Origin: Octopus sinensis
Taxonomy: Eukaryota
NCBI RefSeq assembly: GCF_006345805.1
Contig: NC_042998.1
Location: 99,386,001 to 99,450,000 of the forward strand
Direction: 5' to 3'
DNA: 64,000 bases
Shown here piece by piece: positions 2,053 through 61,518 of the stretch. The notes beneath the pieces were generated by a model, which was given only the letters and a program-made list of their open reading frames with translations, did not search any database and was not told where the DNA came from. The translations under genes were made by a program, and so were the position numbers. Position 1 is the first letter of the stretch; each line of letters starts with the position of its first letter.

Positions 2053-3253
2053 TGATCTATATATTGACCAATCAACTGTGGTGTGATGTTGCTCCTCAGC
2101 TGATGTAAAATTCGCTCCCATTTCACCCTATAAAAACTGCTTAGTGCCTTACTCATCTAGACAATCTTGGGCACCTTGGGCACTCACATAAGCCAGACCA
2201 CTAGGACTAGACCACCTCAACTTCAGACACTCACATACAATGTACCACAGTTTGCTTTCTACGAGACACAGTGCACTTCTCTCCTCCCAGTTGGCAGTTA
2301 TATCATTAGCATCTTTCTTTTGTGAACAGCCAATGCAGTAAATCATGTCTGGTTATAAATATGTTAAAAGTTAAAAATTCATGAGTTTGCTTCATCTATT
2401 ATACACGCAGCCAGCTGGATCACACAACAATGGTTTTCAACAATACAACACATACTAACAAGCAATCAGACAACATTGGTGACAAAGCAACCGCATGACA
2501 AATTCTTCATTTTATTTTATGCTTTTGCTTGTTTTTAAACCAACAAAATCTCTAAAATTGTTGAAGTAACCAAATAATAGTTAAGTGATGAAAATTTTAA
2601 GTTGGTATGTGAGAAAATGATGCATGCTGAATAAGACAGTGATTATTAATATATACCGAATAGTATGTGTTGTAGAGATAAGACTAAATAAGACCTTGAG
2701 GAGAATTAGTTATGTCACACCACAAGACAGTATTGATACTTATAGAGGATTATGATAATAATGTTGATAGTAATAATGGTGGTGGCATGGCTAGTGGTTT
2801 GTACATGAAAATATTTTTCTGTTATTCTTGTACTGGCAGAATTGTTAGTGAATCAAACAAAATGTTTTGTGGCATTTCTGGCTCTTTACAGTCTGAATTC
2901 AAATTCTGCTGAGATTGACTTTGCCTGTCATCCTTTCAGGATCGATAAAATAAGTACCAGTTGAATGCTGGGGTCAATGTAATTGACTTAAAGTTGCTGG
3001 CCTTGTACCAAAATTTGAAACTATTATTCTTCTGTTTGTGGTTGATGTCAGTGCTACCTGACTGGCTCCCATGGTAGTGGTACGTAAAAAACACCATCCA
3101 AGCGTGGTCAATGCCAGTACTGCCTGACTGGCCCCTGTAGAAACCTTGTCAGATCAGATTGGTGCAGCCTCTTGGCTTGCCAGTCCTCAGTCAAACTGTC
3201 CAACCCATGCCAGCATGGAAAGTGGACGTTAAACAATGATGATGATGATGAGT

Positions 3254-3720
3254 AAGGCAGTGAGCTGGTGGAATGGTTAGCACACTGGGCAAAATGCTTG
3301 GTGGTATTTCATGTCTTTACATTCTGAATTCAAGTTCTGCCAAGGTTGACTTTTTTTTTTTATCCTTTCAAGGTTGATAAAATAGCACCAATTAAACACT
3401 GTGATCAATGTAATTGACTTAACCCCCTCCCCCAAAATAGCTGGCCTTGTGCCAAAATTTGAAATCAATATTTATCTGTAGTAAGGTGACAAGTTGACGG
3501 AATCATTAGCACACTGAGTGAAAGTCTTAGTGGCATTTTGTCCATCTTTATGTTCTGAGTTCAAATTCTGCTGAGGTCAGCTTTCCCTTTCATCCTTTTG
3601 GGGTCAATAAGATAAGTATCAATGTACCAATTAAGCACTAGGATCAATGTAATCAACTGACCCACTCCCCCAAAGTTGCCGGCCTTGTGCCAAAAGTTGA
3701 AGCCAATATTTATCTGTAGT
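3254..3720 (+). repeat. Two tandem SINE family A copies; the second is flanked by the 17-bp direct repeat CAATATTTATCTGTAGT
   Basis: Direct repeat at 3466-3482 and 3704-3720. Confidence 0.8.
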
Positions 3721-3897
3721 TTTCCCGACATGAGCAATGCAGAAGTTAATGCTACTGAAGTGGACTGTTGTTAGATATAGCATGTCATTTAGGATTATTG
3801 TAGGATTATTGATTATGGAAATGCCATTTGAGTTGCATTCATTCTTAACTAAAAATATTTTTGTAATTAAATTATTGTTCTTGATCTTTGCTTACAG

Positions 3898-3982: not shown

Positions 3983-5861
3983 GTAAGCAACATTAGCCTT
4001 GTGGTCTAAACTTTTACACACACACATACCAATATCATCATCATCATCGTCATTTGACGTCTGTTTTGGTGGCATGGGTCAGATGATTTGACAGGAACTA
4101 AGCAAGCCGGAGAGCTGCAGCAGGTTTCTTTGTCTTCTATGGCTGAATGTCCTTCCTAATGCCAACCACTTGGGGTGCTTTTTATGTGGCACTAGCACCG
4201 AAGATTTTAATGTGACACCAATACCAGTGGGGTTGCTGAGTAACTTGCAAGAAGACCTATCAGTTGGAAGAGGGAGTGGAACTGACACAGGTGGCTTTGT
4301 ACCAATTGAGAGGTTGAAGTATAATAAAGGAATAGAAATAGGTATCTTACTATAGAGGAGATACTTGGCTACCCCAGTAGGAATAGAAAGGAGATGAAGG
4401 AACAAATAGAATTAAAACAGTGGGGTGGGGGAGTATATTGTGGTATGAAGCAGGTAGAGGGGTATGTTCCATAAGAGTGTGACAGGAGATATATGTCTAT
4501 GTATGTATATATGTATGAATATATGTATGTGTGTATGTAAAGTGGTAAGCCTATTCTGATAACTAAGCCTTGGTTATTTCCATTTATTTAATCATGATTT
4601 AAACTATATATCCATAGCTAGAGATTATTTTACTGTTTTAAATTAGCTTAATAAAATTATTGATGGCCTAAATAATGTCACAGAAACATTACATTGTGTT
4701 TCCTAAAAACAAACACAGCTTTTGTTGTTTTTTTTAAATATCTGAAGTTACAAAACCTTCAACTATTCTCATGAAATTTGTCACTGGAAGAAGTATTATA
4801 TATTTTTTATTTCTATTCTAGAGTTTCAACATGGCCATGTCAGGTATTGTTCTTATTCTCCACACATGCACTTAGTAATAATGGAATTTATTAAAATTCC
4901 ATTTCAAAACCCCATTTCAAATTAGAAAATGTATAATACATATACATTCTCTTTACCATTTTTTTTTTTAGATATTACATATATAATAGCCATTGCTTGA
5001 ATATTACACTTTCATCACAGAAATTAAAAAGGATTAGACAAAGAAAGTGTGCATATCTTTGTGTGTTTGTATGTGTGTGTATGTGAAAGAAATAGAGAAT
5101 TAGAGTTGAGCAATCAAGTAAGAAGAAGAATAAAAACTGAATATTTGACACTTGTAGAGTATTTTAATGCTGTTGCATAAAGTGTATAGAGGAGCAAATT
5201 ATTTATTATTATTATATAAATGTTAAAAAAATTTAGCATATATAAATTATAATTTATGAAGTCTGCAAACATAAGTACTACTGCTTTAGTTCATATCTTT
5301 ATATCATGTCTCTCTACTACATAGTTTGGAAGATATATTAAAAGGTGGTTTTGAAAATATAGTTTTGCAAAGTCAAAATGTTTTAAATAATGTTGCCTGT
5401 AGTGGTATGACAAAAATACAGTTATTGTAAAACAGTAAAAATAAGTGAATAAAGAAGATTGTAACCCTTTGCCATCTGCATAGCATAATGATGAGGTGAA
5501 ATATGTCAGAACAGGAACTGGAAACAGTTTGCAGATGAGACTCACTTCACAGAGAACTAATCACTATGAAAGACTTGTCATTCCTACATGTAGATCTGAT
5601 GTAGTCTTCTGGTTTCTATACTGGGCCTTATCATCTTATATGTTGTTATTGTTGAGTCCTTATTTAAGTGGTAAAAGAAAGCGTCTTTCGTAAATTTCTA
5701 GCTATGAAGTTGTTTCCAGGAATCTTTTTGATACTGAAGAAATAATTTTGTAGCTTCTTCCCTTGAGATTTTGGTAAAGGTCTCTCCTGACTTCTTGGGC
5801 TGGCTATAGTTGAAAATGATTAAATTTTTCAAACAGAATGTGTGTGTGTGTGTGTGTATAT

Positions 5862-9404: not shown

Positions 9405-9630
9405 TGTTGGTACCACATAAAAAGTACCTGTGCTGGTGCCATGTAAAAGGCACCCCAAACACTCTGTAAAGTATCTGGCATTAGGAAGGGCATCCAGCAT
9501 TAGAAACTTAGCCAAAACACATGAGTGGAGACCGATGTAGCTCTCCAGCTTGCCAGTTCTAGCCAAACTGTTCAACCCATGCCAGTACGGAAAACAAACG
9601 TTAAATGATAATGACAGTAATGATGATGAT
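9405..9630 (+). repeat. Short RTE-3'-tail copy (truncated LINE or RTE-mobilised SINE)
   Basis: GGCATTAGGAAGGGCATCCAG...CAACCCATGCCAG...GTTAAATGAT tail shared with 17190-17350; other copies approx. 1075-1290(-), 3060-3250(+), 4045-4200(-), 46740-46935(-), 55547-55705(-), 61052-61345(+). Confidence 0.75.
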
Positions 9631-15168: not shown

Positions 15169-17350
15169 GGCTATAACCTAGTCACCCGTATAGTCAACCA
15201 GGTGATACACGAAGGAGTCATACCCAATGACTGGTGTAGCAGCATACTAGTCAACTGCTACAAAGGTAAAGGTGATGCCCTGGATACAAATAATTACAGA
15301 GGTATCAAGCTGTTGGATCAGGTAATGAAGGTTACGGAGAGGGTCATAGCCCAACTAATTAGAGAGAGAGTTAGTTTAGATGAGATGCAGTTTGGGTTGT
15401 CCCAGGGAAAAGCACCACTGATGCTATATTCCTGGTAAGGCAGCTGCAGGAGAAATACCTAGCCAAAGATAAGCCCCTGTACCTGGCTTTCGTTGACATG
15501 GAGAAAGCCTTTGATAGGGTCCCCCGATCCCTCATCTGGTGGTCAATGAGGAAACTAGGGATAGATGAATGGCTGGTGAGGGCTGTGCAAGCCATGTACA
15601 GAGATGCCGTAAGTAAGGTCAGAGTTGGCAACATGTACACAGAAGAATTCAAAGTAGAGGTTGGGGTCCACCAGGGTTCAGTACTCAGCCCCCTCCTATT
15701 TATCATAGTCCTCCAGGCAATAACGGAGGAATTCAAGACAGGTTGCCCCTGGGAGCTCCTCTATGCTGACGACCTCGCTCTAATCGCTGAGTCACTATCA
15801 GAACTGGAGGAGAAGTTCCAGGTGTGGAAGGAGGGTTTAGAATCGAGGGGCCTTAGAGTCAACCTAGCTAAAACCAAAGTACTAATAAGTAGAAAGGTAG
15901 AAAATCCACAAATATCCTCAGGAAGATGGCCCTGCTCGATCTGTAGAAAAGGTGTAGGTAGAAACTCTATAAGATGTACCCAGTGTAAGCTATGGACACA
16001 TAAGAGGTGCAGCAATGTCAAAGGTAGGCTAACTGGGAAGATAGTTTTTGTATGTGGCAGGTGCTCTGGAGCATTGACCTCCGAAAATCTGCAGAAAACA
16101 ACTTCCGTCACTTTCCGGGGGGAAAAACTAGAAGTAGTTGATAGCTTCCGCTATCTAGGTGACCAAGTCAGTAGTGGGGGTGGGTGCGCTGAAAGTGTAA
16201 CTGCTAGAATAAGAATAGCCTGGGCAAAGTTTAGGGAGCTCTTACCTCTGCTGGTGACTAAAGGCCTCTCGCTCAGAGTAAAAGGCAGACTGTATGATGC
16301 ATGTGTACGAACAGCTATGCTACATGGCAGTGAAACATGGGCCGTGACTGCTGAGGACATGCGTAAGCTCGTGAGGAACGAAGCCAGTATGCTCCGATGG
16401 ATGTGTAATGTCAGTGTACTTACTCGACAGAGCGTTAGTACCTTGAGAGAAATGTTGTACCTAAGAAGCATCAGTTGTTGTGTGCAAGAGAGACGATTGC
16501 GCTGGTATGGTCATGTGGCGAGAATGGATGAAGATAGGTGTGTGAGAAAGTGCCAATCCCTAGCAGTTGAGGGAACCCGTGGAAGAGGTAGACCCAGGAA
16601 AACCTGGGATGAGGTGGTGAAGCACGACCTTCGGACATTAGGTCTCACCATGGAAATGACTAGAGACCGAGACCTATGGAAGTATGCTGTGCGTGAGAAG
16701 ACCCGGCAAGACTAGTGAAGCCATAATCCGTGGCCCCTACCTGGGACGTAGTCAGTCCACCTGTGCATACCTTCCTTCTTGTGACACTTGTGAAGACCTG
16801 TTGAGGCAAGTGAGAATCGAATCGAATCAAATCAAATCAAATCGAACCAAATCAAAATAGATGAACATCAATGGAATTTGTATCCTTGTGGTACCAGTGC
16901 CGGTGGCACATAAGAAAACCATCCGAACGTGACCGTAGCCAGTACCGCAACGACTGGCCTCCGTGCTGAGGGCACGTAACAAACACCATCCGAGCGTGGC
17001 CGTCCGCCAGCCTCGTCTGGCACCTGTGTCGGTAACACATAAGAAAACACCATCCGAGCGTGACCGTCAGCCAGCCTCGCCTGGCACCTGTGTCGGTGGC
17101 ACATAAAAAACACCATCCGAGCGTGGCCGTCTGCCAGCCTCGTCTGGCACCTGTGTCGGTGGCACATAAAATCACCCACTACACTCTCGGAGTGGTTGGC
17201 GTTAGGAAGGGCATCCAGCTGTAGAAACACTGCCATATCTGACTGGCCTGGTGCAGCCTTCGGGCTTGCCAGACCCCAGTTGAACCGTCCAACCCATGCT
17301 AGCATGGAAAGCGGACGTTAAATGATGATGATGATGATGATGATGATGAT
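15169..17350 (+). mobile_element. Young 5'-truncated RTE LINE: RT region (one -1 frameshift near 15397), PHD-like insert, 3' UTR and (GAT)n tail
   Basis: NNYRGIKLL, QFG, FVDMEKAFDRVPR, GVHQGSVLSPLLF, LLYADDL, FRYLG, RRLRWYGHV; ORF ends at 16715; 3' UTR has an (AATCG/AATCA)n run at about 16815-16856 and 62-64-nt tandem units; tail at about 17322-17350. Confidence 0.95.
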
Positions 17351-21737: not shown

Positions 21738-23489
21738 GTATGAATTTGCTATTGAACTTCTTTATATTTTTTCCTATATAAAACAATGTATGCATGTGTA
21801 CAAATGAAAGTAAGAATCCATGCATATTTGCTTACTTACACATATACATACACATTTTTTTTTTGCAAATAACTTGCAGATGCAAGTGCTAACAGTTGAA
21901 AGCTCTGCATACCAGATGCTAGCAAGTTTGTGAGGTCATCCATTAAAACCCACCTACCCACCAACCTACAATTATTGTTTTCTGTCAGTTATTATTTGTT
22001 TTATGTTTGCTTCTTTAGACTTGTGTGAAATAAGATTTGCTGTACTTCAATCAAACAACAACACTTGCTTCCTATTTATACAAATCATAGACATTCAAAC
22101 TGAACAATAAACAGGCAAGAATCATCCGTAGGCTACTGTTACTGTATTTTATAAAATAGCACAATAAACAAACAAAATATAATGATGTAAAATTATTTAT
22201 TGTTTTGTCTTTGTATACATGTAGAGATATGTATGTAAAAGTGTACTTATAGTGAGTACTAAAAGCACTTAAATTAGTGAACTGCACTTCTTTATGATAC
22301 CGTTTGCAAATAAATAATGTGATATGACAAACTGGCTCTTCAGTTAGTATGTTTGTACTCTGTCACCACAGGAACCATAATAAATTATGGTTCCAAGAAC
22401 CATAATAAATTCTGCCTTTATCATCATTTGACAACTGTTTTCCATGTTGGTAGGAGCTGTATGGTTTGGCAGGATCCATTGAATCAAAATACTGTCATGT
22501 TCCAATGTCTTCTTAGTCATAATTAGATGCCTTTCCTAATGCCATCCACTTTTACAGAGTGTACTGGGTGCTTTTGTTTTTGCGGCATCAGTGCTAGTGA
22601 GGTTGCCTTGTAACTTGCAAAGCTAAAGAGACCCTTTAATTAGATATGTTTGAAATGTCACAAACATTCAATTAGCTTTCACTTTCTGGATGTTTGTATC
22701 ATCATCATCATTATTCAATGTCTGTTTTCCATGCTGGCATGGGTTGTACGGTTTGACATGGCCAGCCAGGGGTATATATAATTGTAAACAATCAAATAAT
22801 TCCACAGTAACACAAGCAGGTCTAGTCTCACCTTTAATATTAATTTTATTTTTGCTTCATCTGTGTCATTCACTTCCATCATTTTGTTTATTATAATTCC
22901 ATTCACATCTTGAATGTTTTATAGGATTATTAAATTGATTCCCAATGTACTTTAGTTTAATGACTTCAGAAATATGAAAGATGGAGTCGACCTTAACACA
23001 ATTTGAACTCAGTATATAAAGAGCAAAAGATGAATACCACTGGCATTTTTCCTAATACTCTAATGATTCTGTCAGTCTACTGACAAAAGTTTATGATATG
23101 GGAGTTGAATCCACAATGTAAAGAGACTTGTAAAGAGTTAAATTTTGCATTGGATTTTGCCTGCAGCTCTACTGATAGTGTCAATTCACTCCTCTAATTG
23201 ACATAGATATGGAAATGTATGCCTACTAATAAATTTACATATTGACACATATTTATTCATATATGCACACCGTGTGAGTATAATTATATATGTGTGACTA
23301 TTTATTGGTGTACTTCATCCATTTCCTTTATGTAATTTCACACGTTTGACAAAGAATTCATTTTATGTTCCTTGGGCTTAGGGAGAAAAGATGAGCAGAG
23401 ATTAAACTTATATATATCTTTCAGGATGTGTTCATCATCATCATCATCACCACCACCATAAACACTACCATTATCATTATACTTGTTTT

Positions 23490-44756: not shown

Positions 44757-46080
44757 GTTCATCATTGTTTAACGTCCACTTTACATGCAGGCATGGGTTA
44801 GATGGTTTGACTGAAGGTTGGCAAGCCAGAAGGCTGCACCAGGCTCCAATCCGGCCTGTCAAAGTTCCTACAGCTGGATGCCCTTCCTAATGTCAACCAC
44901 TCTGAAAGTGTAATGGGTGCTCTTTATGTGCCATCGGCACAAGGGCCAGTCAGGCGGTACTGGCATCAACCATGCTTGAATGGTGCTTTTTTTACTTGCT
45001 ACTGGCACAGGACCAGTCAGGTGGCACTGGCATCAGCCATGCTCGAATGGTGCTTTTTACGTACCACCAGCACAGGTGCCAATCAGGTGGTACTGTCATT
45101 GGCCACAACGACTTCACTTGCCTCAACAGGCCTTCGCAAGCGCAGTTTATCGTCCAATGATTGAAGGGTACTCTTAAATGGGCTGGTTATGCTGCACTGG
45201 CATAGGCCACAGTTATGGTCTCACTTGGTTTGCTGGGTCTTCTCAAGCAATAGCATATCTCCAAAGGTCTCAGTACCTTGTCTTTGAATTGGTAAGGCCC
45301 AACTTTCAAAGGTTGTGCTTCATCACCTCATCCCAGATCTTCCTGGGTCTACCTTTTCCACAGTTTCACTCTACTGCTAGGACGTGACACTTTTTCACAC
45401 AGCTGTCTTCATCCATATGCAACACATAACCATACTAGCACAGTTGTCTCTCTTGCACACCACATTTAATGCTTCTTATGTCCAACTTTTCTACCAGGGT
45501 GCTTACACTGTCGTGTATGCACACTGACATTACACAACCAGCAGAGCATACTAGCTTCATTTGTTGCAAGCTTATGTCCTCAGCAGTCACAGCCCATGTT
45601 TCACTGTCGTGTAGCATGGCTGTTTTGCACACATGCATCATATAGTCTACCTTTCACTCTGAGCGAGAGGCCCTTTGTCACCAGCAGAGGTAAGAGCTCT
45701 CTGAACTTTGCCCAGGCTATTCTTATTCCAGCAGCTACACTCTCAGAGCATCCACTCCCGCTACTGACTTGGTCACCGAGGTAATGGAAGCTATCAAATA
45801 CTGGTAGTTTTCCCCACTGGAATGTGATGGAAGCTGTTTTCTGCTCATTTTCAATGTTTATTGCCCCAGAGCATTTTCCACACACAAAAACTATATTCCT
45901 AGTTAGCCTTCCTTTGATATTGCTGCACCTCTTATGTGTCCATAGCTTACACGGGGTACATCTTATGGAGTTTCTACCTATGCCTTTTCTATAGATTGAG
46001 CAGGGCTATCTACCTGAAGAGATTTGTGGTTTGTGTGCTTTCCTATAGAAACCTGGACTGCATACTGAGGACATCTGAAA
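44757..46080 (-). mobile_element. Older 5'-truncated RTE LINE copy (same family as 15169-17350)
   Basis: AKFRELLPLLVTKGLSLRVKGRLYDACV, decayed PHD-like insert, 3' UTR tandem units, (GAT)n tail; stops and frameshifts. Confidence 0.88.
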
Positions 46081-50449: not shown

Positions 50450-50723
50450 CTAGGAAAAGATTAATATTCAATAAATAACAAATAAGAGAATATTTAAATG
50501 CTGGTATTCAACAACATATATATTAAATACTAGCAAGTTAAATTTATTTAGGGCATGATCCACATGATATCTTTTCTACTTCAAAATACATTCATGATTC
50601 CTGAATTTCTTTCTTCTATGCTTCATATGAGTACCACTTGAAAACTATTTTTCCCCATGTAAATCAGCACCAGCTTGCTATTTTTCAAACAATAATCAAT
50701 ATGATTCAAATTCTGCAATACAA

Positions 50724-52804
50724 TTTATCTAGGTCATCCCTCAGGACACCCCACAAGACGTTTCCACACATTTTCTGCATTCACCTTGATTTTCCATAAT
50801 GGTCCTCAGCTCCTGTACCCCTTCCATACCAGTATTCTCCAGCAAGTTTTCGATACAGGTTATCTTCCTCCTTCCTCTCCTGGTTCTTCCTTCTGTTGGT
50901 TGCCAGAGCACTAGCTTGCTAGCAATTTCGTTAGTATGTCTGATGCAGTGTCTAGCTAGCCTCATCCTTCTATGCTGTATCTTCAATGTTACTTTTGGTA
51001 GTGTTAGGAAATTATAACTAAACAGGTAAACAGTTTTACATGCTGTACTGTAAGATCAGGATGAATTCATTGTCAAAATGGGGGAAACTAGGTGTTATTA
51101 GCTAAAACAGTAAAACTATAACAAATTGGCTAGACCCTGGCAAACCTTTATAAGCAGAGATAATTGTACCCACCAGTTTTTTGTGACAGTTTTTCCATGA
51201 GACAAAGTTGTTCAATTGGATTCTGGAAGCTATGATTACCTATTTAGTTTATGCATATTGTGCTAACTATTTTCTATTAAGATAAATGTTAAAATATATA
51301 TAAATAGCTAAAGGGTGTATGAATTAATTTTTCATGTAGCCAAATTTTTGTATTAGACAACTGTAAATTTTGTCTAATGGTTACTCAGCATGCTTGTATG
51401 AAGCAGTTTTGTATGAATTTAAAGCAAACTAGATTTTTTGTTTAACTATTTAATTTGTTTACTATAATTATTGGGGTAGTCTGGCAGCCATTTTGTGTCA
51501 TGAACTTTTAGTTTAAACGGTTGCTTTGACATTAGATTTATTTATGTTTAGGTCCAAGGTTTCTACATCCAAGGTTCGAAACCCAAGGTTGAACACCGAA
51601 TTGATGGAAGACAGATTTTATGACATTCGAAGGTTCAAAATCCACTGTTTGAAATCTGAAGTTCGAAAACCGAATTTGTACTAGAATCGAAATCCAGGTT
51701 TTATGAAGTCCAAATATTTGGAAGGTATATTTTTGAAAAAAAACAAATTTGTGAGGCCAGGTTTTGTGTGAGATCAATTTTGGTGAAACCAAAAACTAGG
51801 ATTCAGAGTCCGAATTCTGAACTGTATATATATATATATGTTACCTTTGTAAATATTTTAACTGCAAATCTGGTGTAGCATTTGCTTTTTGTTTGTGTAT
51901 ATATTCGTTTTGTATGTAAGCTGATTTTTATGCTGACTATTGTTAATAATATTTTAGAAAAATTTCATGGTGTGTTGTTGTTTTGGATTCACCCTTTCCT
52001 CGTTGATTCTACAAATTTGGGTAATGGCCACCAGGTCATAACAGTAGTCCCTGGTATAAGTTGGCATTTGTTGCATGACTCTTCCAGGAGACACCAAGTG
52101 CCATTCTAAGCATCCTCGTATAACAAACATCCAGTTGATTCAGTACACAGAGGAATGATGATGAAGATACTTAAAGCACATATTCCACCAAGAATTCTGA
52201 GAGCAATAAGTAAGCTGTATGAGAACACCAGAGAGAAAGTGATCACTCCTGATGGGGAGACGGAATACTTTGAAGTCAAAGTTGGAGTATCACAAGGCGA
52301 CACGCTAGCACCTTATCTCTTTGCCATTGTTCTGGACTATGTAATGCGTAGAACATATGAGGGCAAGGAAGAAGAACTGGGATTCAAACTGCATAGTCAA
52401 AGAAGTAGACAGCATCAAGCAGTAAAAATAACTGACTATGTTGATGACTTTACTAACAGACAGGACAGATCAGGCACAGGAGGTGCTGAGCAGATTAGAG
52501 TAGGAATCGGGGAAGGTAGGATTGTACTGTAATGCAAAGAAAACAGAGCTGCAAGTAACCAACCACGAAATGCCTGTGTCAGTGAATGTGAGAGACGGTA
52601 AGTCACTCAAGGTAGTTGAAAATTTCAAATACCTTGGTGTATGGACAAAGTACTGAAGACATCGTAGCAAGGAAAGCTCTTGCCTGGAGCGCACGCCATA
52701 AATTGAGAAAGGTATGGATTTCAAAGTTAGCAAAGAAATTGAAAGGTTGTTTATGGCAACAGTGGAGTCTGTTCTTCTTGGATGCTCACTAAAGCATTGA
52801 AGAC
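50724..52804 (-). mobile_element. 5'-inverted RTE-type LINE insertion (second family), interrupted by a solo LTR
   Basis: 9-bp TSD GCAATACAA (50715-50723, 52805-52813); RT segment FDSVHRG...GDTLAPYLF...TKALKTQ on + (52135-52808); continuation QLDVCYTRMLRMALGVSW...YQGL/PKVTLKIQHRRMRL on - (52137-52044 and 51001-50730). Confidence 0.88.
51002..52043. mobile_element. Solo LTR-like insertion (1042 bp)
   Basis: Termini TGTTA...TAACA; 4-bp TSD GTAG (50998-51001, 52044-52047); removing it restores the LINE frame LYQGLPKV. Confidence 0.8.
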
Positions 52805-53342
52805 GCAATACAAGCTAAACTTAAACACTTATCAATACAGTATTTTCATTATTTCCAGTAATGAGCAGTACCAGCACTGTATATTTTTAGCTAAGCAGAT
52901 TAATTCAACAAAAATTTCAGTACCTTGGCCACACATACATTGTACAGTACCAATTCTTTCAAAAATAATCAATTCAAAATACAAGGCTATTTAGCCTCAA
53001 CACATTTGTACTGAAATAAAACTGCTTACATATTCAATGCTACTATTTTGTGATGATTCTTATATGATGACTTCTTAAATGGAGCACAAGTAGCTTGAGA
53101 GATGGTGTTTGCAGGAGAGAGAACTACAATGCGGCAGAGGAAGACATGGGAAGAAGAAAAGGTATTGGATCTAAAGCATGTTAAGTCTTAAGAGATGGAA
53201 TGACAAAGGAACATCAAGAGTGACAATATGAAGTAGAACAGACACATCTAATCCATGCCAGTGTGACAAAACAGATGTTATATTACAACAATATAGATAA
53301 CTATATATAAATGAATGAAAATGTTAGTTTATAGACTTTTAC

Positions 53343-53700: not shown

Positions 53701-54655
53701 CATCATCATCATCGTTTAACGTCCGTTCTCCATGCTAGCATGGGTTGGACGGTTCGACCGGGGATCTGCACCAGACTCCAGTCTTATCTGGCAATGTTTC
53801 TACAGCTGGATGCCCTTCCTAACGCCAACCACTCCGTGAGTGTAGTGGGTGCTTTTTACGTGCCACCTGCACAGGTGCCAGGCGAGGCTGGCAACGGCCA
53901 CGGTCGGATTGGTGTATTTTACGTGCCACCGGCACGGAGGCCAGTCGAGGCGGCGCTGGCATCGGCCACGAGTCGGATAGTGCTTTTTACATACCACCAG
54001 ACCAGGGATCCTGGCTGGTTCAATTCGATTTCGATTGCCCCAACATGTCTTCGCAAGCAAAGGGGGTTGGCATGGGTGCCTGTCGTCGGATGAGGTTCTA
54101 TATTGACTTCACTTGCCTCAACAGGTCTTTGTGTCCAAGGGAGGAAAGGCATGCATAAGTGGGCTGGGCTCACTTGACCTGCCTGGTCTTCTCACGTACA
54201 GCATATTTCCAAAGGTCTCGGTCGCTGGTCATTACCTCAGTGAGGCCTAAAGTTCGAAGGTCGTGCTTCACCACCTCGCCCCAGGTTTTCTTGGGTCTAC
54301 CTCTTCCACGGGTTCCCTCAACTGCTAGGGATTGGCACTTTCTCACACACCTATCTTCATCCATTCTCGCCACATGACCATACCAGCGCAATCGTCTCTC
54401 TTGCACACCACAACTGATGCTTCTTAGGTACAACATTTCTCTCAAGGTACTAACGCTCTGTCGAGTATGTACACTGACATTACACATCCATTGGAGCATA
54501 CTGGCTTCATTCCTCACAAGCTTACGCATGTCCTCAGCAGTCACGGCCCATGTTTCACTGCCATGTAGCATGGCTGTTCGTACACATGCATCATACAGTC
54601 TGCCTTTTACTCTGAGCGAGAGGCCTTTAGTCACCAGCAGAGGTAAGAGCTCCCT
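53701..54655 (-). mobile_element. Young 5'-truncated RTE LINE (ORF end, 3' UTR, (GAT)n tail)
   Basis: ORF end differs at about 9 of 153 aa from the copy at 16260-16715; flanked by TTATATATAT on both sides (53691-53700, 54655-54664). Confidence 0.92.
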
Positions 54656-54706
<51 letters not shown>

Positions 54707-55809
54707 GCCGAGTCCACATGTAATATATAATAAACAATTATATAATATATATTAACCAATTGGATATTTTAATCAATAATTAAATCTAAAACACAACCTG
54801 AATACCTAATTTTGTACAAGAGAGACAAGTTTTTAATTACAGTAAAGAATATTGCTCAGATACTGATGTTTTGAATCAGTTCAGAAGGTAGAGCAAAGAC
54901 AATGTACCACCTTATTTAGTCATTTCCAGTGTTTTAGGTCCATGCACACAAACATTCTTTTTATCTTAGGCTATAATAGTCCATTGCCCTCCCAAATCCA
55001 TTTCCACCACTTTATTTCTATTGTCATTCTCACCCAAACCAGTCTTGTACTTCCCTTCATTGTTTTCATGTATTAATTTGTCATCCTCCTATCTTCTTTT
55101 CTGTCTGCCTCTCCCTTCTCAATCTCTCTCAAGGAATCTGTTCCAGGGTTCTTTATGTCTATCTGTTGTCCTTTCATCTAGCTAAATCACCTGCTCACCT
55201 TCACTTTGTTTTAGCTAGTTCTCAAAGTATATCTCTAACTCCTGTTTTCCCTCTCATATCTATACATCAAATTCTATCTTTCAACATAATATTCATGCAA
55301 AGAGACCCTATCAGTCTCAACATTTTCCTCAGTGCACTGCAAGAAATATTCAAGAAAATATGTTTGTAGAAAGACGTAGAATCCTTAAAAGCTATAAGAT
55401 TTGTGAACGACACAGGTTTGTGAATCACCACAAATACAGTCACAGAACCGGGAGGATAACTTAAGCACATAAACTACGGAAAGTAGGGTGAATGTACACA
55501 AAGGAAAGGTCAAAAACATGTCAAACTGCAACATACACAAAGAGATCATCATCATCATCATTTAGCGTCCGTTTTCCATGCTAGCATGGGTTGGACGGTT
55601 CAACTGGGGTCTGTGAAGCTGGAAGGCTTCATCAGGCCCAGTCAGATCTGGCAGTGTTTCTACAGCTGGATGCCCTTCCTAACGCCAACCACTCCGTGAG
55701 TGTAGATAAGGAGAGAAAACAATATACACACTTATAACCCACCACTGACTGTTTATTTCATATTTATTCAAGGACAGAAAACTGAGAACACTTGTAAAAA
55801 TGTACTTAC

Positions 55810-59405: not shown

Positions 59406-61052
59406 CACTAGTTTACAGAGAAATTGAGGCAAATATAAAAATAGTTGTTCCAGCCTAATTTTGGGGTGCTGATTTCAGATACAAAACCAATTTTCACTCA
59501 TCACCTCTAGTTTTTGAGATATACATTATTATGATTTTGCAACAATTCATGCAACCATATATATGATCAATTTTTATTTTGTTTTCCAGATTTTTGTGAT
59601 ACATATAATACATATCTCTACAATGATTTCAGACACTTCAAAACACCAATGATGCATCAACAAGGCAAATTCATTCTGCTACGTGTGGAGAGATTTCATG
59701 ACAGTTGCACAGCGCCAAACAATTACTTCCCTCCTGAGAACTGCTTACTTTCATTATTTTGACTGTAAAATTGGAGATCTGGATAAATCCTGGGTCCCAT
59801 CTAATCCCTGCTACAATAGATTAACAACAAGAAAGCAGCCTTCAACTTTGCTGTCCCGATGGTTTGGAGAGAGTCAGAAAGTCATGCAGATGATTGTTAT
59901 TTTTTACTAACAAATACAACAGCTTCTTCTAGAAAAAAGATAAAATATCCCAACTTTCCCTCAGCTACAAGACCTGTCCCTCAACTCAGATGATCCCCCT
60001 GTCCCTAGACTCCCAGCAAATAAGGATCTTCCTTCATCAGATGAAGAAATGCCTTCAGGGGAAGGTTCTACCAAGTTGATTTCTTCTAAAGACAATGAGC
60101 CCCACTGGACCATGCAGGAAGACCTGAATGATCTTGCCCATGATTAGTATCTATCTAAGTAGCAGTCAGAGCTTCTGGCATCCCGGCTTAAGCATTGGTC
60201 AAGGCAGATGTAAGGATCATCAGTTTCAGGACATGAACCAGGACTTTGCTTCATTCTTTAACATGGAAAACAGGTTGTGCTACTGCACAAATGTCTCTGG
60301 CTTATCTACCTCCCTTGGTTTCCCACACAATCCCTCAGACTGGCATCTTGTCATAGATTCTTCCAAGCAAAGTCTGAAAGCTGTGTTCCTGCACAAGGAG
60401 AATAAATACTCTAGCATTCCTATTGCCTACTCAGTCCATCTGAAGGAGACATATCACAATATAGAGCTCTTATTGGAAGCTGCCAAGTACAACCAGTGCC
60501 AATGGAGTCTCTGCAGGGACCTCAAGGTCATTGGGCTCCTTATGGGTATGCAAACAGGCTTCACAAAGTACTGTTGCTTTCTCTGTCTCTGGGACAGTCA
60601 GGTTGTGTCCAAGCACTATAAGCAAAAGGACTGGGGATCTAGGAGCACTTTCATGTCTGGTGAACACAGTGTCCAAGAAAATCCTCTGGTGGACATGAAC
60701 AAGGTGCTTCTTACTCCTCTTCATATCAAGCTTGGTTTAATGAAGAATTTTGTGAAGGTCATGGACAAAAATGGTGCTGCCTTCCAACACTTGTGCACTC
60801 TGTTCCCAGCCTTGAGTTCTGCTAAACTCAAGGAGGGCATCTTCATCAGACCTCAGATCTGAGAGGTGCTGAAGGATAAGGACTTTGAGGAGCTCCTTAC
60901 CTTAAAAGAATTGAGAGCATAGGAATCGTTTAAGTCAGTCTGCCATGGCTTCCTTGGTAACACACAAGTACTAGATTACCAAGAGTGTATCGAGAAGTTG
61001 TTATAGTCTTATGAGGATATAGCATGCTGAATGTCACTCAAAATTCGTTTTG
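59406..61052 (+). mobile_element. Chapaev(3)-like DNA transposon remnant (left end plus broken transposase)
   Basis: Begins CACTAG; N-terminal FCYVCGDF..AYFHYFDCKIGDLDKSWVP; core LVIDSSKQSLKAVFLH, DLKVIGLLMGMQTGFTKYCCFLCLWDS, PLHIKLGLMKNFVK, KLKEGIF, MSLKI; cut off by an RTE-tail copy at about 61052. Confidence 0.8.
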
Positions 61053-61518
61053 TGGGTTGTTGCCAGTACTGCCAGACTGGCTTCCTGTGCCAGTGGCATG
61101 TAAAAAGCACCATCCAAATGTGGCCGATGCCAGTGCCACCTGACTGGCTCCTGAGCCAGTGGCACGTAAAGAGCACCCACTACACTCTTGGAGTGTTTGG
61201 CGTTAGGAAGGGCATCCAGCTGTAGGAATTTTGCCAGATCAGATTGGAGCCTGGTGCAGCCTCCTGGCTTTCCAGACCTCAGTCAAACTGTCCAACCCAT
61301 GCCAGCATGGAAAATGGACGTTAAACAATGATGATGATGATGATGTGATAGAGCAAGACTGTTAAAAAAATTGAATTTACCTCATCAAAATTAGTAAAAA
61401 ACACCTATTCACATCCTTGTCTCAGAGCAAAAAAATATTCTGTAAACCAGTGTTATTATTACTGACTATCATTATAAAAAAATTAAAGAAATCCAAAAAT
61501 AAAAAGAAATAATCAAAC

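Follow-up and report, generated by a model that had tools for sequence, protein, structure and literature searches.

Twin priming is accepted as the origin of 5′-inverted copies of the long interspersed nuclear element (LINE) L1, which make up ~30% of young human L1 copies. Twin-primed (5′-inverted) L1 insertions are said to have been described by Ostertag & Kazazian in 2001. In twin priming, one target end primes at the 3′ end of the RNA while the other anneals internally, and the two cDNAs are joined at short complementarity; the footprint is microhomology at both the 5′ junction and the inversion junction (PMC2912911). Among 5′-inverted L1 copies in human and chimpanzee, 95% have microhomology at the 5′ junction, mostly of 2–5 bp (PMC2912911). 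Here we describe a unit with this footprint in a 64,000-nt stretch of Octopus sinensis DNA (contig NC_042998.1, positions 99,386,001–99,450,000; hereafter the window). The unit is a dead, 5′-truncated copy of an octopus RTE-type LINE, with its 5′ part inverted, and we think it very likely that it reflects one retrotransposition event of an RTE-clade element, resolved by twin priming and followed by decay.

In a comparative cell-culture study, Yamaguchi et al. (2014) obtained over 200 de novo inserts from human L1, ZfL2-1 and Nimb-2_DR; 5′ inversions were found only with L1 in human cells, bar one Nimb-2_DR insert in chicken DT40, and none was found for ZfL2-1 (PMC4245944). The literature that we searched under ‘twin priming’ concerned L1 or L1-mobilised RNAs only. 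The original prediction, made from the letters of the window, also took such inversions to be mostly documented for L1. We found no report of a twin-primed RTE element in the literature searched on twin priming and on octopus RTE LINEs; the study of octopus RTE LINEs by Petrosino et al. (2022) does not address insertion architecture (PMC9115989). Features of RTE elements are target site duplications (TSDs) in the range 7–15 bp and a microsatellite-like tail (PMC6007223).

Structure of the inverted unit

Two reverse transcriptase (RT)-like pieces, A and B, lie in opposite orientation in the unit. The inverted 5′ segment A (52138–52804, + strand) carries the RT domain from ..DSVHRG to ..LTKALKT. 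Translated over three frames, it reads DSVHRGMMMKILKAH...SQGDTLAPYLF...YVDDF...FKYLG...ALAWSARHKL...LTKALKTQ and matches the Pfam family RVT_1 (E=1.7e-15); it is decayed, with at least three frameshifts and several in-frame stops. The uninverted segment B (− strand) begins at 52137, is interrupted at 52048 and continues from 51001, from where its protein reads PKVTLKIQHRRMRLARHC..., i.e. PKVTLKIQHRRMRLARHCIRH...LVLWQPTEGRTRRGRRK..., as far as a stop codon at 50741–50743. Its proximal part, QLDVCYTRMLRMALGVSWKSHATNANLYQGL (52048–52137), has its 5′ end at the inversion junction. Its distal part (50727–51001) holds C-terminal coding sequence (open reading frame (ORF) 50741–50986), the stop codon TGA, a very short 3′ untranslated region (UTR) and the conserved terminus.

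The joined translation of A and B matched hundreds of RT proteins in the protein collection, the nearest named match being an uncharacterised Octopus sinensis protein, 78% identical. No gap falls at the A/B join in a ten-sequence alignment of homologs: in the window LTKALKTQ runs directly into LDVCYTRMLR where the O. sinensis protein has LTKALKKQLDGCYARVLR, and on the homolog P0002 segment A corresponds to residues 144–383 and segment B to residues 384–492. The two pieces had been predicted to be consecutive in the protein, and this was borne out. DNA fetched around the O. sinensis protein (chromosome CM016877.1) contains a longer, uninverted copy of the family, L001, and we number the element (el) by position in this 3,471-bp reference copy (L001:1400–4870). 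With 51002–52047 removed, as had been proposed for the alignment, A+B is colinear with L001:3797–4859 at 86% identity over 1,032 bp. Taken separately, A is 86% identical to L001:3794–4497, proximal B 88% identical to L001:4492–4589, and distal B 87% identical to L001:4585–4859 and 89% identical to L005, an Octopus vulgaris copy described below. Substitution identity to L001 is alike in the two pieces (90.9% for A, 89.0% for B; Fisher p=0.32). A and B are thus equally diverged from L001, and the possibility raised at the outset, that the pieces belong to different subfamilies, is not supported.

Segment A corresponds to el ~2395–3099 (~2395–3095 without its last four bases, GCAA), and segment B runs from el 3097/3100 to ~3460, followed by the tail (3471). 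From el ~2395 to the 3′ end no element nucleotide is missing, and no more than 3 nt occur twice. A Gln codon had been noted in both pieces (KALKTQ, ending at 52808, and QLDVCYTRMLR, beginning at 52137); the overlap of the pieces is 0–3 nt, which microhomology accounts for fully.

The unit is bracketed by the direct repeat that the original prediction proposed as a TSD. The 9-bp word GCAATACAA occurs exactly twice in the window, counting both strands. The left copy (50715–50723) is the 3′ TSD in element orientation, where it reads TTGTATTGC, and the right copy (52805–52813) is the 5′ TSD. Between the left copy and the terminus ..GACCTAGAT lies a minimal 3′ tail, AAA in sense (50724–50726, − strand), as placed by alignment of nine 3′ ends; homology of the unit to L001 and L005 stops at 50727/50726. 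The ends of the element were thereby fixed independently of the TSD, by homology to the O. sinensis copy. In 200,000 random placements in the window, two 20-nt windows 2.1 kb apart had a word of at least 9 nt in common 150 times (p~7.5e-4). A TSD of 9 bp is within the RTE range. A single pair encloses both pieces, and there is none around A or B alone.

These observations bear on whether two independent insertions of the same family, a short 5′-truncated B and a separate fragment A, came to lie head to head. LINE copies are dense in the window, with other fragments at 15175–16715 and 54170–54634. Nevertheless, A lacks a 3′ end and so cannot itself be a target-primed insertion, while the end of A would meet the start of B within 3 nt of a 3.47-kb element with a chance of only ~0.002 were the pieces independent; the one TSD pair around both pieces adds to this. 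Given the missing 3′ end of A and the abutting coordinates of the two pieces, we regard two separate insertions as effectively refuted.

Both junctions carry short matches, at the places where they had been predicted. Segment A, whose 3′ end faces outward to the right TSD copy, ends ..GAAGACGCAA, then TACAAGC. Segment A closes and the TSD opens with the same tetranucleotide, GCAA (52805–52808), because the family sequence continues through GCAA (..AAGCAACTGG.. at this site); the left TSD copy shows that GCAA was also part of the original target. Read in element orientation, the overhang of the top strand terminates in ..TTGTATTGC-3′, whose last four bases, TTGC-3′, pair with GCAA at the internal site in the RNA. 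On the + strand the inner junction is ..ACATCCAG TTG ATTCAGTACAC.., and this TTG (52135–52137) opens segment A (family ..TTTTTGATTCAG..) and matches, in reverse complement, the first bases of B (CAACTGG). If one mismatch is allowed, the inner overlap extends to 7 nt (TTGATTC versus TTGCTTC, 6/7 matching). At the A/B point the family sequence is ..GAAGAAGCAACTGGATGG.., with CAAC in segment B of the window and in two related families and CAGT in L001. Judged against these relatives, both GCAA (TSD/A) and TTG (A/B) appear to be genuine microhomologies.

Segment B is interrupted by an extra 1,042 bp (51002–52043). CTAC is present once at this point in L001 but on either side of this stretch in the window (GTAG on the + strand, at 50998–51001 and 52044–52047), and the comparison indicates a later insertion with a 4-bp TSD, of unassigned class. 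The stretch is AT-rich, with a degenerate 14-bp periodic block (51553–51705) and a (TA)7 run (51825–51839). Its terminal inverted ends extend over only ~5 nt (TGTTA..TAACA), and no convincing terminal inverted repeats were found in it. It is missing from L001, from L005 and from all homologous proteins; neither the window nor the fetched loci contain a further copy, and there was no Rfam match at E<=1. We rejected an intron, as GT..AG boundaries do not fit on the coding strand.

Family assignment and a second inverted copy

L001 is full-length, spanning 3,471 bp between perfect 12-bp TSDs (TTGATTCAGTTG). In L001 and in L004, a related near-full-length copy, the domain order is endonuclease, linker, RT and a C-terminal region of ~170 aa. 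The intact endonuclease ORF of L004 has an SDH motif and matches Pfam Exo_endo_phos_2 and Exo_endo_phos, below cutoff; the decayed L001 endonuclease translation gave nothing useful against Pfam or PDB. A profile of the L004 and L001 endonucleases found 326 proteins, many with PF03372/PF14529, and several of the matches, from Octopus vulgaris, Diadema, Patiria, Saccostrea and fishes, are named ‘craniofacial development protein 2-like’. Craniofacial development protein 2 (CFDP2) derives from BovB/RTE elements.

Of the nine aligned 3′ ends, six come from ENA contigs of related families and the other three from the window, O. sinensis and O. vulgaris; at least four assemblies are represented. All share ..GGGGCGTCCTGACGGACGACCTAGRT, then a short tandem tail that differs by family: (AAGGT)n, (GAGGT)n, (AAGT)n or (TAGA)n in relatives, GAGAGATAAGA in L001 and AAA in the window. 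Since this conserved terminus lies three bases before the TSD, segment B ends at the true 3′ terminus of the element. Close to the terminus is a conserved 5-bp hairpin (CGTCC-TGAC-GGACG), paired in 95.6% of cells over the nine copies, with compensatory changes in two pairs; controls in which the hairpin was slid along gave 24–56%. In the window it occupies 50735–50748 (− strand; sense TGTCC-TGAG-GGATG), and it has counterparts in L001–L008. The stop codon TGA is in the loop, ~17 nt ahead of the tail, and the 3′ UTR is shorter than 20 nt. The hairpin probably serves as the feature that the RT recognises, as in a ‘stringent’ LINE.

L1-clade elements carry both ORF1 and ORF2, end in poly(A) and have TSDs with a peak at ~15 bp. 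None of this was found here: 9 of 9 3′ ends lack poly(A), the TSDs are of 9 and 12 bp, and the element is ~3.5 kb with a single reading frame, as read in L001 and L004, both decayed, with ~630 bp upstream of the endonuclease outside the inspection for ORF1. The RTE-type assignment, which uses endonuclease and 3′-end features and not formal placement in a phylogeny, appears well supported. The prediction of an RTE-type element in an invertebrate accords with the closest copies, which are in Octopus sinensis and O. vulgaris, as well as with the CFDP2-like endonuclease and the hairpin followed by a microsatellite-like tail.

The endonuclease profile also found an O. vulgaris protein, P0236, 76% identical to the L001 endonuclease. 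Its locus, L005 (chromosome OX597827.1; L005:3610–6325, ~83.3687–83.3714 Mb), is a second 5′-inverted copy of the same family. The endonuclease and linker (el 334–1972) lie on the + strand at L005:4633–6325, and the RT and C-terminus (el 2026–2715 and 3109–3460) on the − strand at L005:4629–3610. At the inversion point 53 nt are missing and there are 3 extra nt; a 393-bp internal deletion came later. Because these breakpoints differ from those in the window, L005 represents an independent event. A protein-coding gene is currently annotated over its inverted endonuclease fragment (‘hypothetical predicted protein’ / CFDP2-like, P0236).

Other copies that had not been selected for their structure are ordinary: L001 is full-length, L004 is colinear, and L002, L003, L006, L007 and L008 are 5′-truncated. 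A census of metagenome contigs covered 80 loci, with 27 close RTE relatives, ~13 of which have an evaluable 5′ end; none is 5′-inverted. Three metagenome loci with matches on both strands proved to be separate copies with overlapping coordinates. Overall, one of ~21 unselected copies in the lineage is 5′-inverted, and one of two in the octopus family itself, which are too few to give a rate.

The O. vulgaris copy bears on two further accounts of the window unit. If a collapsed or mis-joined repeat had produced the head-to-head arrangement during assembly, which the richness of the region in repeats might favour, one would not expect nucleotide-exact contiguity of A and B, a unique 9-bp repeat at independently fixed ends and two microhomologies, nor a similar structure in an independent chromosome-level assembly of another species; we consider an artefact very improbable. 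Alternatively, an ordinary 5′-truncated insertion, with A and B both on the − strand, could have undergone a later local inversion of exactly A, for example by two-break repair or TTG/CAA recombination. The end product would be identical in sequence, and the copy is old enough (~10% divergence, a nested insertion) to have had time for rearrangement. Such an inversion, however, would have had to break at the boundary of element and TSD to the nucleotide and to leave both TSDs direct and intact. It has no need of the 4 nt by which the TSD end matches the internal site, a match that priming predicts, and the recurrence of the architecture in O. vulgaris with different breakpoints points to a mechanism linked to integration. 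A later inversion is therefore unlikely, if somewhat less so than an assembly error.

Proposed insertion mechanism and neighbouring repeats

The unit presents el ~2395–3471, ordered and non-redundant, between two direct 9-bp copies of the target, with the 5′ two-thirds (A) flipped. Orientation, 3′ terminus, contiguity, TSD and both microhomologies all agree with the twin-priming architecture that the original prediction put forward. While the architecture is seen in the sequence, the order of events we infer; the steps are given in element orientation (window − strand). An endonuclease of the apurinic endonuclease (APE) type would nick the bottom strand at ..ATACAA^GC.., and reverse transcription, primed at the hairpin and short tail with which the RTE RNA ends, would yield a first cDNA, segment B. 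Before this cDNA was complete, the top strand would be cut 9 nt away, leaving the 3′ overhang ..TTGTATTGC-3′. The TTGC of the overhang could pair with GCAA inside the same RNA (codons T-Q of ..LTKALKTQLD..) and prime a second reverse transcription towards the RNA 5′ end, yielding segment A. No nucleotide would be lost, because the first cDNA ran up to the internal priming site. The cDNA 3′ ends (..CCAGTTG-3′ and ..GAATCAA-3′) would then anneal via TTG/CAA (6/7 if extended), be filled in and be ligated, to give TSD - A(inverted) - B - tail - TSD. Later changes are ~10% substitutions, frameshifts, stop codons and the 1,042-bp insertion, with its 4-bp TSD, into B.

Several points weigh against this account. 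L001 reads GCAG instead of GCAA, and with only two same-family reference copies there are few sequences from which to take the ancestral bases at the microhomologies. The TSD of L005 is not scorable because both ends of the copy abut (TA)n, and no 5′-inverted copy was present among the ~13 evaluable metagenome RTE relatives. Work in cell culture indicates that 5′ inversion depends on both the LINE and the host, and short overhangs have been suggested to prime poorly or not at all (PMC4245944); the overhang here is only 9 nt. Finally, we infer a single-event origin from structure alone. In the window and the fetched loci, including L001, the search for a paralogous empty site found no other copy of the joined flanks.

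One further match touches the position at which segment A begins. A stretch of 10 nt in the L001 TSD, TTGATTCAGT, recurs without mismatch at el 2395–2404, where segment A of the window starts (sites of the 10-mer and TSD: L001:1388–1399, 3794–3803 and 4871–4882; window 52135–52144). By our own estimate the chance of a 10-mer match is ~0.01–0.04 anywhere in the element and ~1e-5 at that position. Both TSDs, in the window and in L001, start with TTG in element orientation. Speculatively, a nick preference of the endonuclease (..AATCAA^) might help to set inversion and truncation points, or the match may be a coincidence (n=2). The O. vulgaris junction, ..GCTTTGAA.., is unlike ..AATCAA, and with a single coincidence as its sole support we did not retain the idea of an endonuclease motif.

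The window also contains a second LINE family, at 15175–16715 (+) and 54170–54634 (−), with ~25–30% amino acid identity to the RTE element. It has a 405-aa open RT ORF in which a weak PHD/C1-like cysteine-rich stretch, below the Pfam cutoff, separates the RT from the C-terminal region, and the family finishes in (ATG)n at its 3′ end. Its last 50–310 bp recur in at least nine copies, all ending at the same base and followed by (ATG)n, at 417–589, 3135–3241, 9436–9613, 17081–17330, 22706–22757, 44760–46046, 53707–53997, 55553–55705 and 61072–61333; they are either heavily 5′-truncated LINEs or a short interspersed nuclear element with the LINE’s 3′ tail. The same 3′ repeat adjoins the RTE copies in L001 and L005.

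Just to the right of the RTE insertion, 53094–53162 encodes ..RQRKTWEEEK.., like the GRPRKTW motif of LINE C-terminal regions, and is probably another decayed LINE fragment. A 244-aa ORF at 60128–60862 (+; ..FTKYCCFLCLWDSQVVSKHYKQKDWGSRS..) matched nothing in Pfam above noise, and an exact look-up in the protein collection found nothing; it is perhaps a fragment derived from a transposase. Exact look-ups of a 125-aa ORF and of a set of ten window ORFs were negative as well.

Comparison with described LINEs

The RTE LINEs of Petrosino et al. (2022) come from the same genus, carry the same clade label and have a single ORF for endonuclease and RT (PMC9115989). In their O. vulgaris element the ORF is 3,327 nt long, the UTRs are ~600 nt and a C2H2 finger is present (PMC9115989), whereas the family described here is ~3.47 kb overall, with a 3′ UTR of less than 20 nt plus tail. 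With RTE/BovB elements and CFDP2 it has in common a CFDP2-like endonuclease, a microsatellite-like tail and a TSD within the range of 7–15 bp (PMC6007223).

The Nimb-2_DR insert in DT40 cells likewise came from a non-L1 APE-type LINE and carried a 5′ inversion, but it was experimental, from a different clade and a single event; the octopus RTE family provides two natural germline examples. Against the argument that short overhangs do not prime, the window offers a natural counter-example from another clade, in which the overhang is 9 nt and the pairing 4 nt. If our reading is correct, the twin-priming pathway is open to a distant LINE clade with different 3′-end recognition and shorter target-site staggers. 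That twin-primed 5′ inversion is a regular outcome of retrotransposition for the octopus RTE family, at several percent of insertions or more, is a tentative suggestion that we are inclined to doubt; were it so, early second-strand cleavage and priming by a 9-nt overhang would be general properties of APE-type LINEs rather than peculiarities of L1 in mammalian cells. Annotators of mollusc genomes should be aware that RTE fragments lying head to head can stem from a single insertion. One decayed copy alone is a small result, and its value lies in the census that it motivates.

The closest likeness is to the 5′-inverted L1 copies of mammals. In human, chimpanzee and mouse, these have the same layout of TSD - inverted 5′ part (3′ end outwards) - uninverted 3′ part with the 3′ end of the element - TSD, likewise with 2–5 bp of microhomology at the 5′ and inversion junctions and with segments that are contiguous or nearly so (Kojima, 2010; PMC2912911). 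The TSD of inverted L1 copies is typically 10–20 bp (PMC4245944), as against 9 bp in the window. In contrast to L1, the window element belongs to the RTE clade, has a cephalopod host and lacks poly(A), ending instead in a hairpin and a short microsatellite-like tail. We conclude that the novelty is modest: a known mechanism, seen in two examples, in a LINE clade and a phylum new to it.

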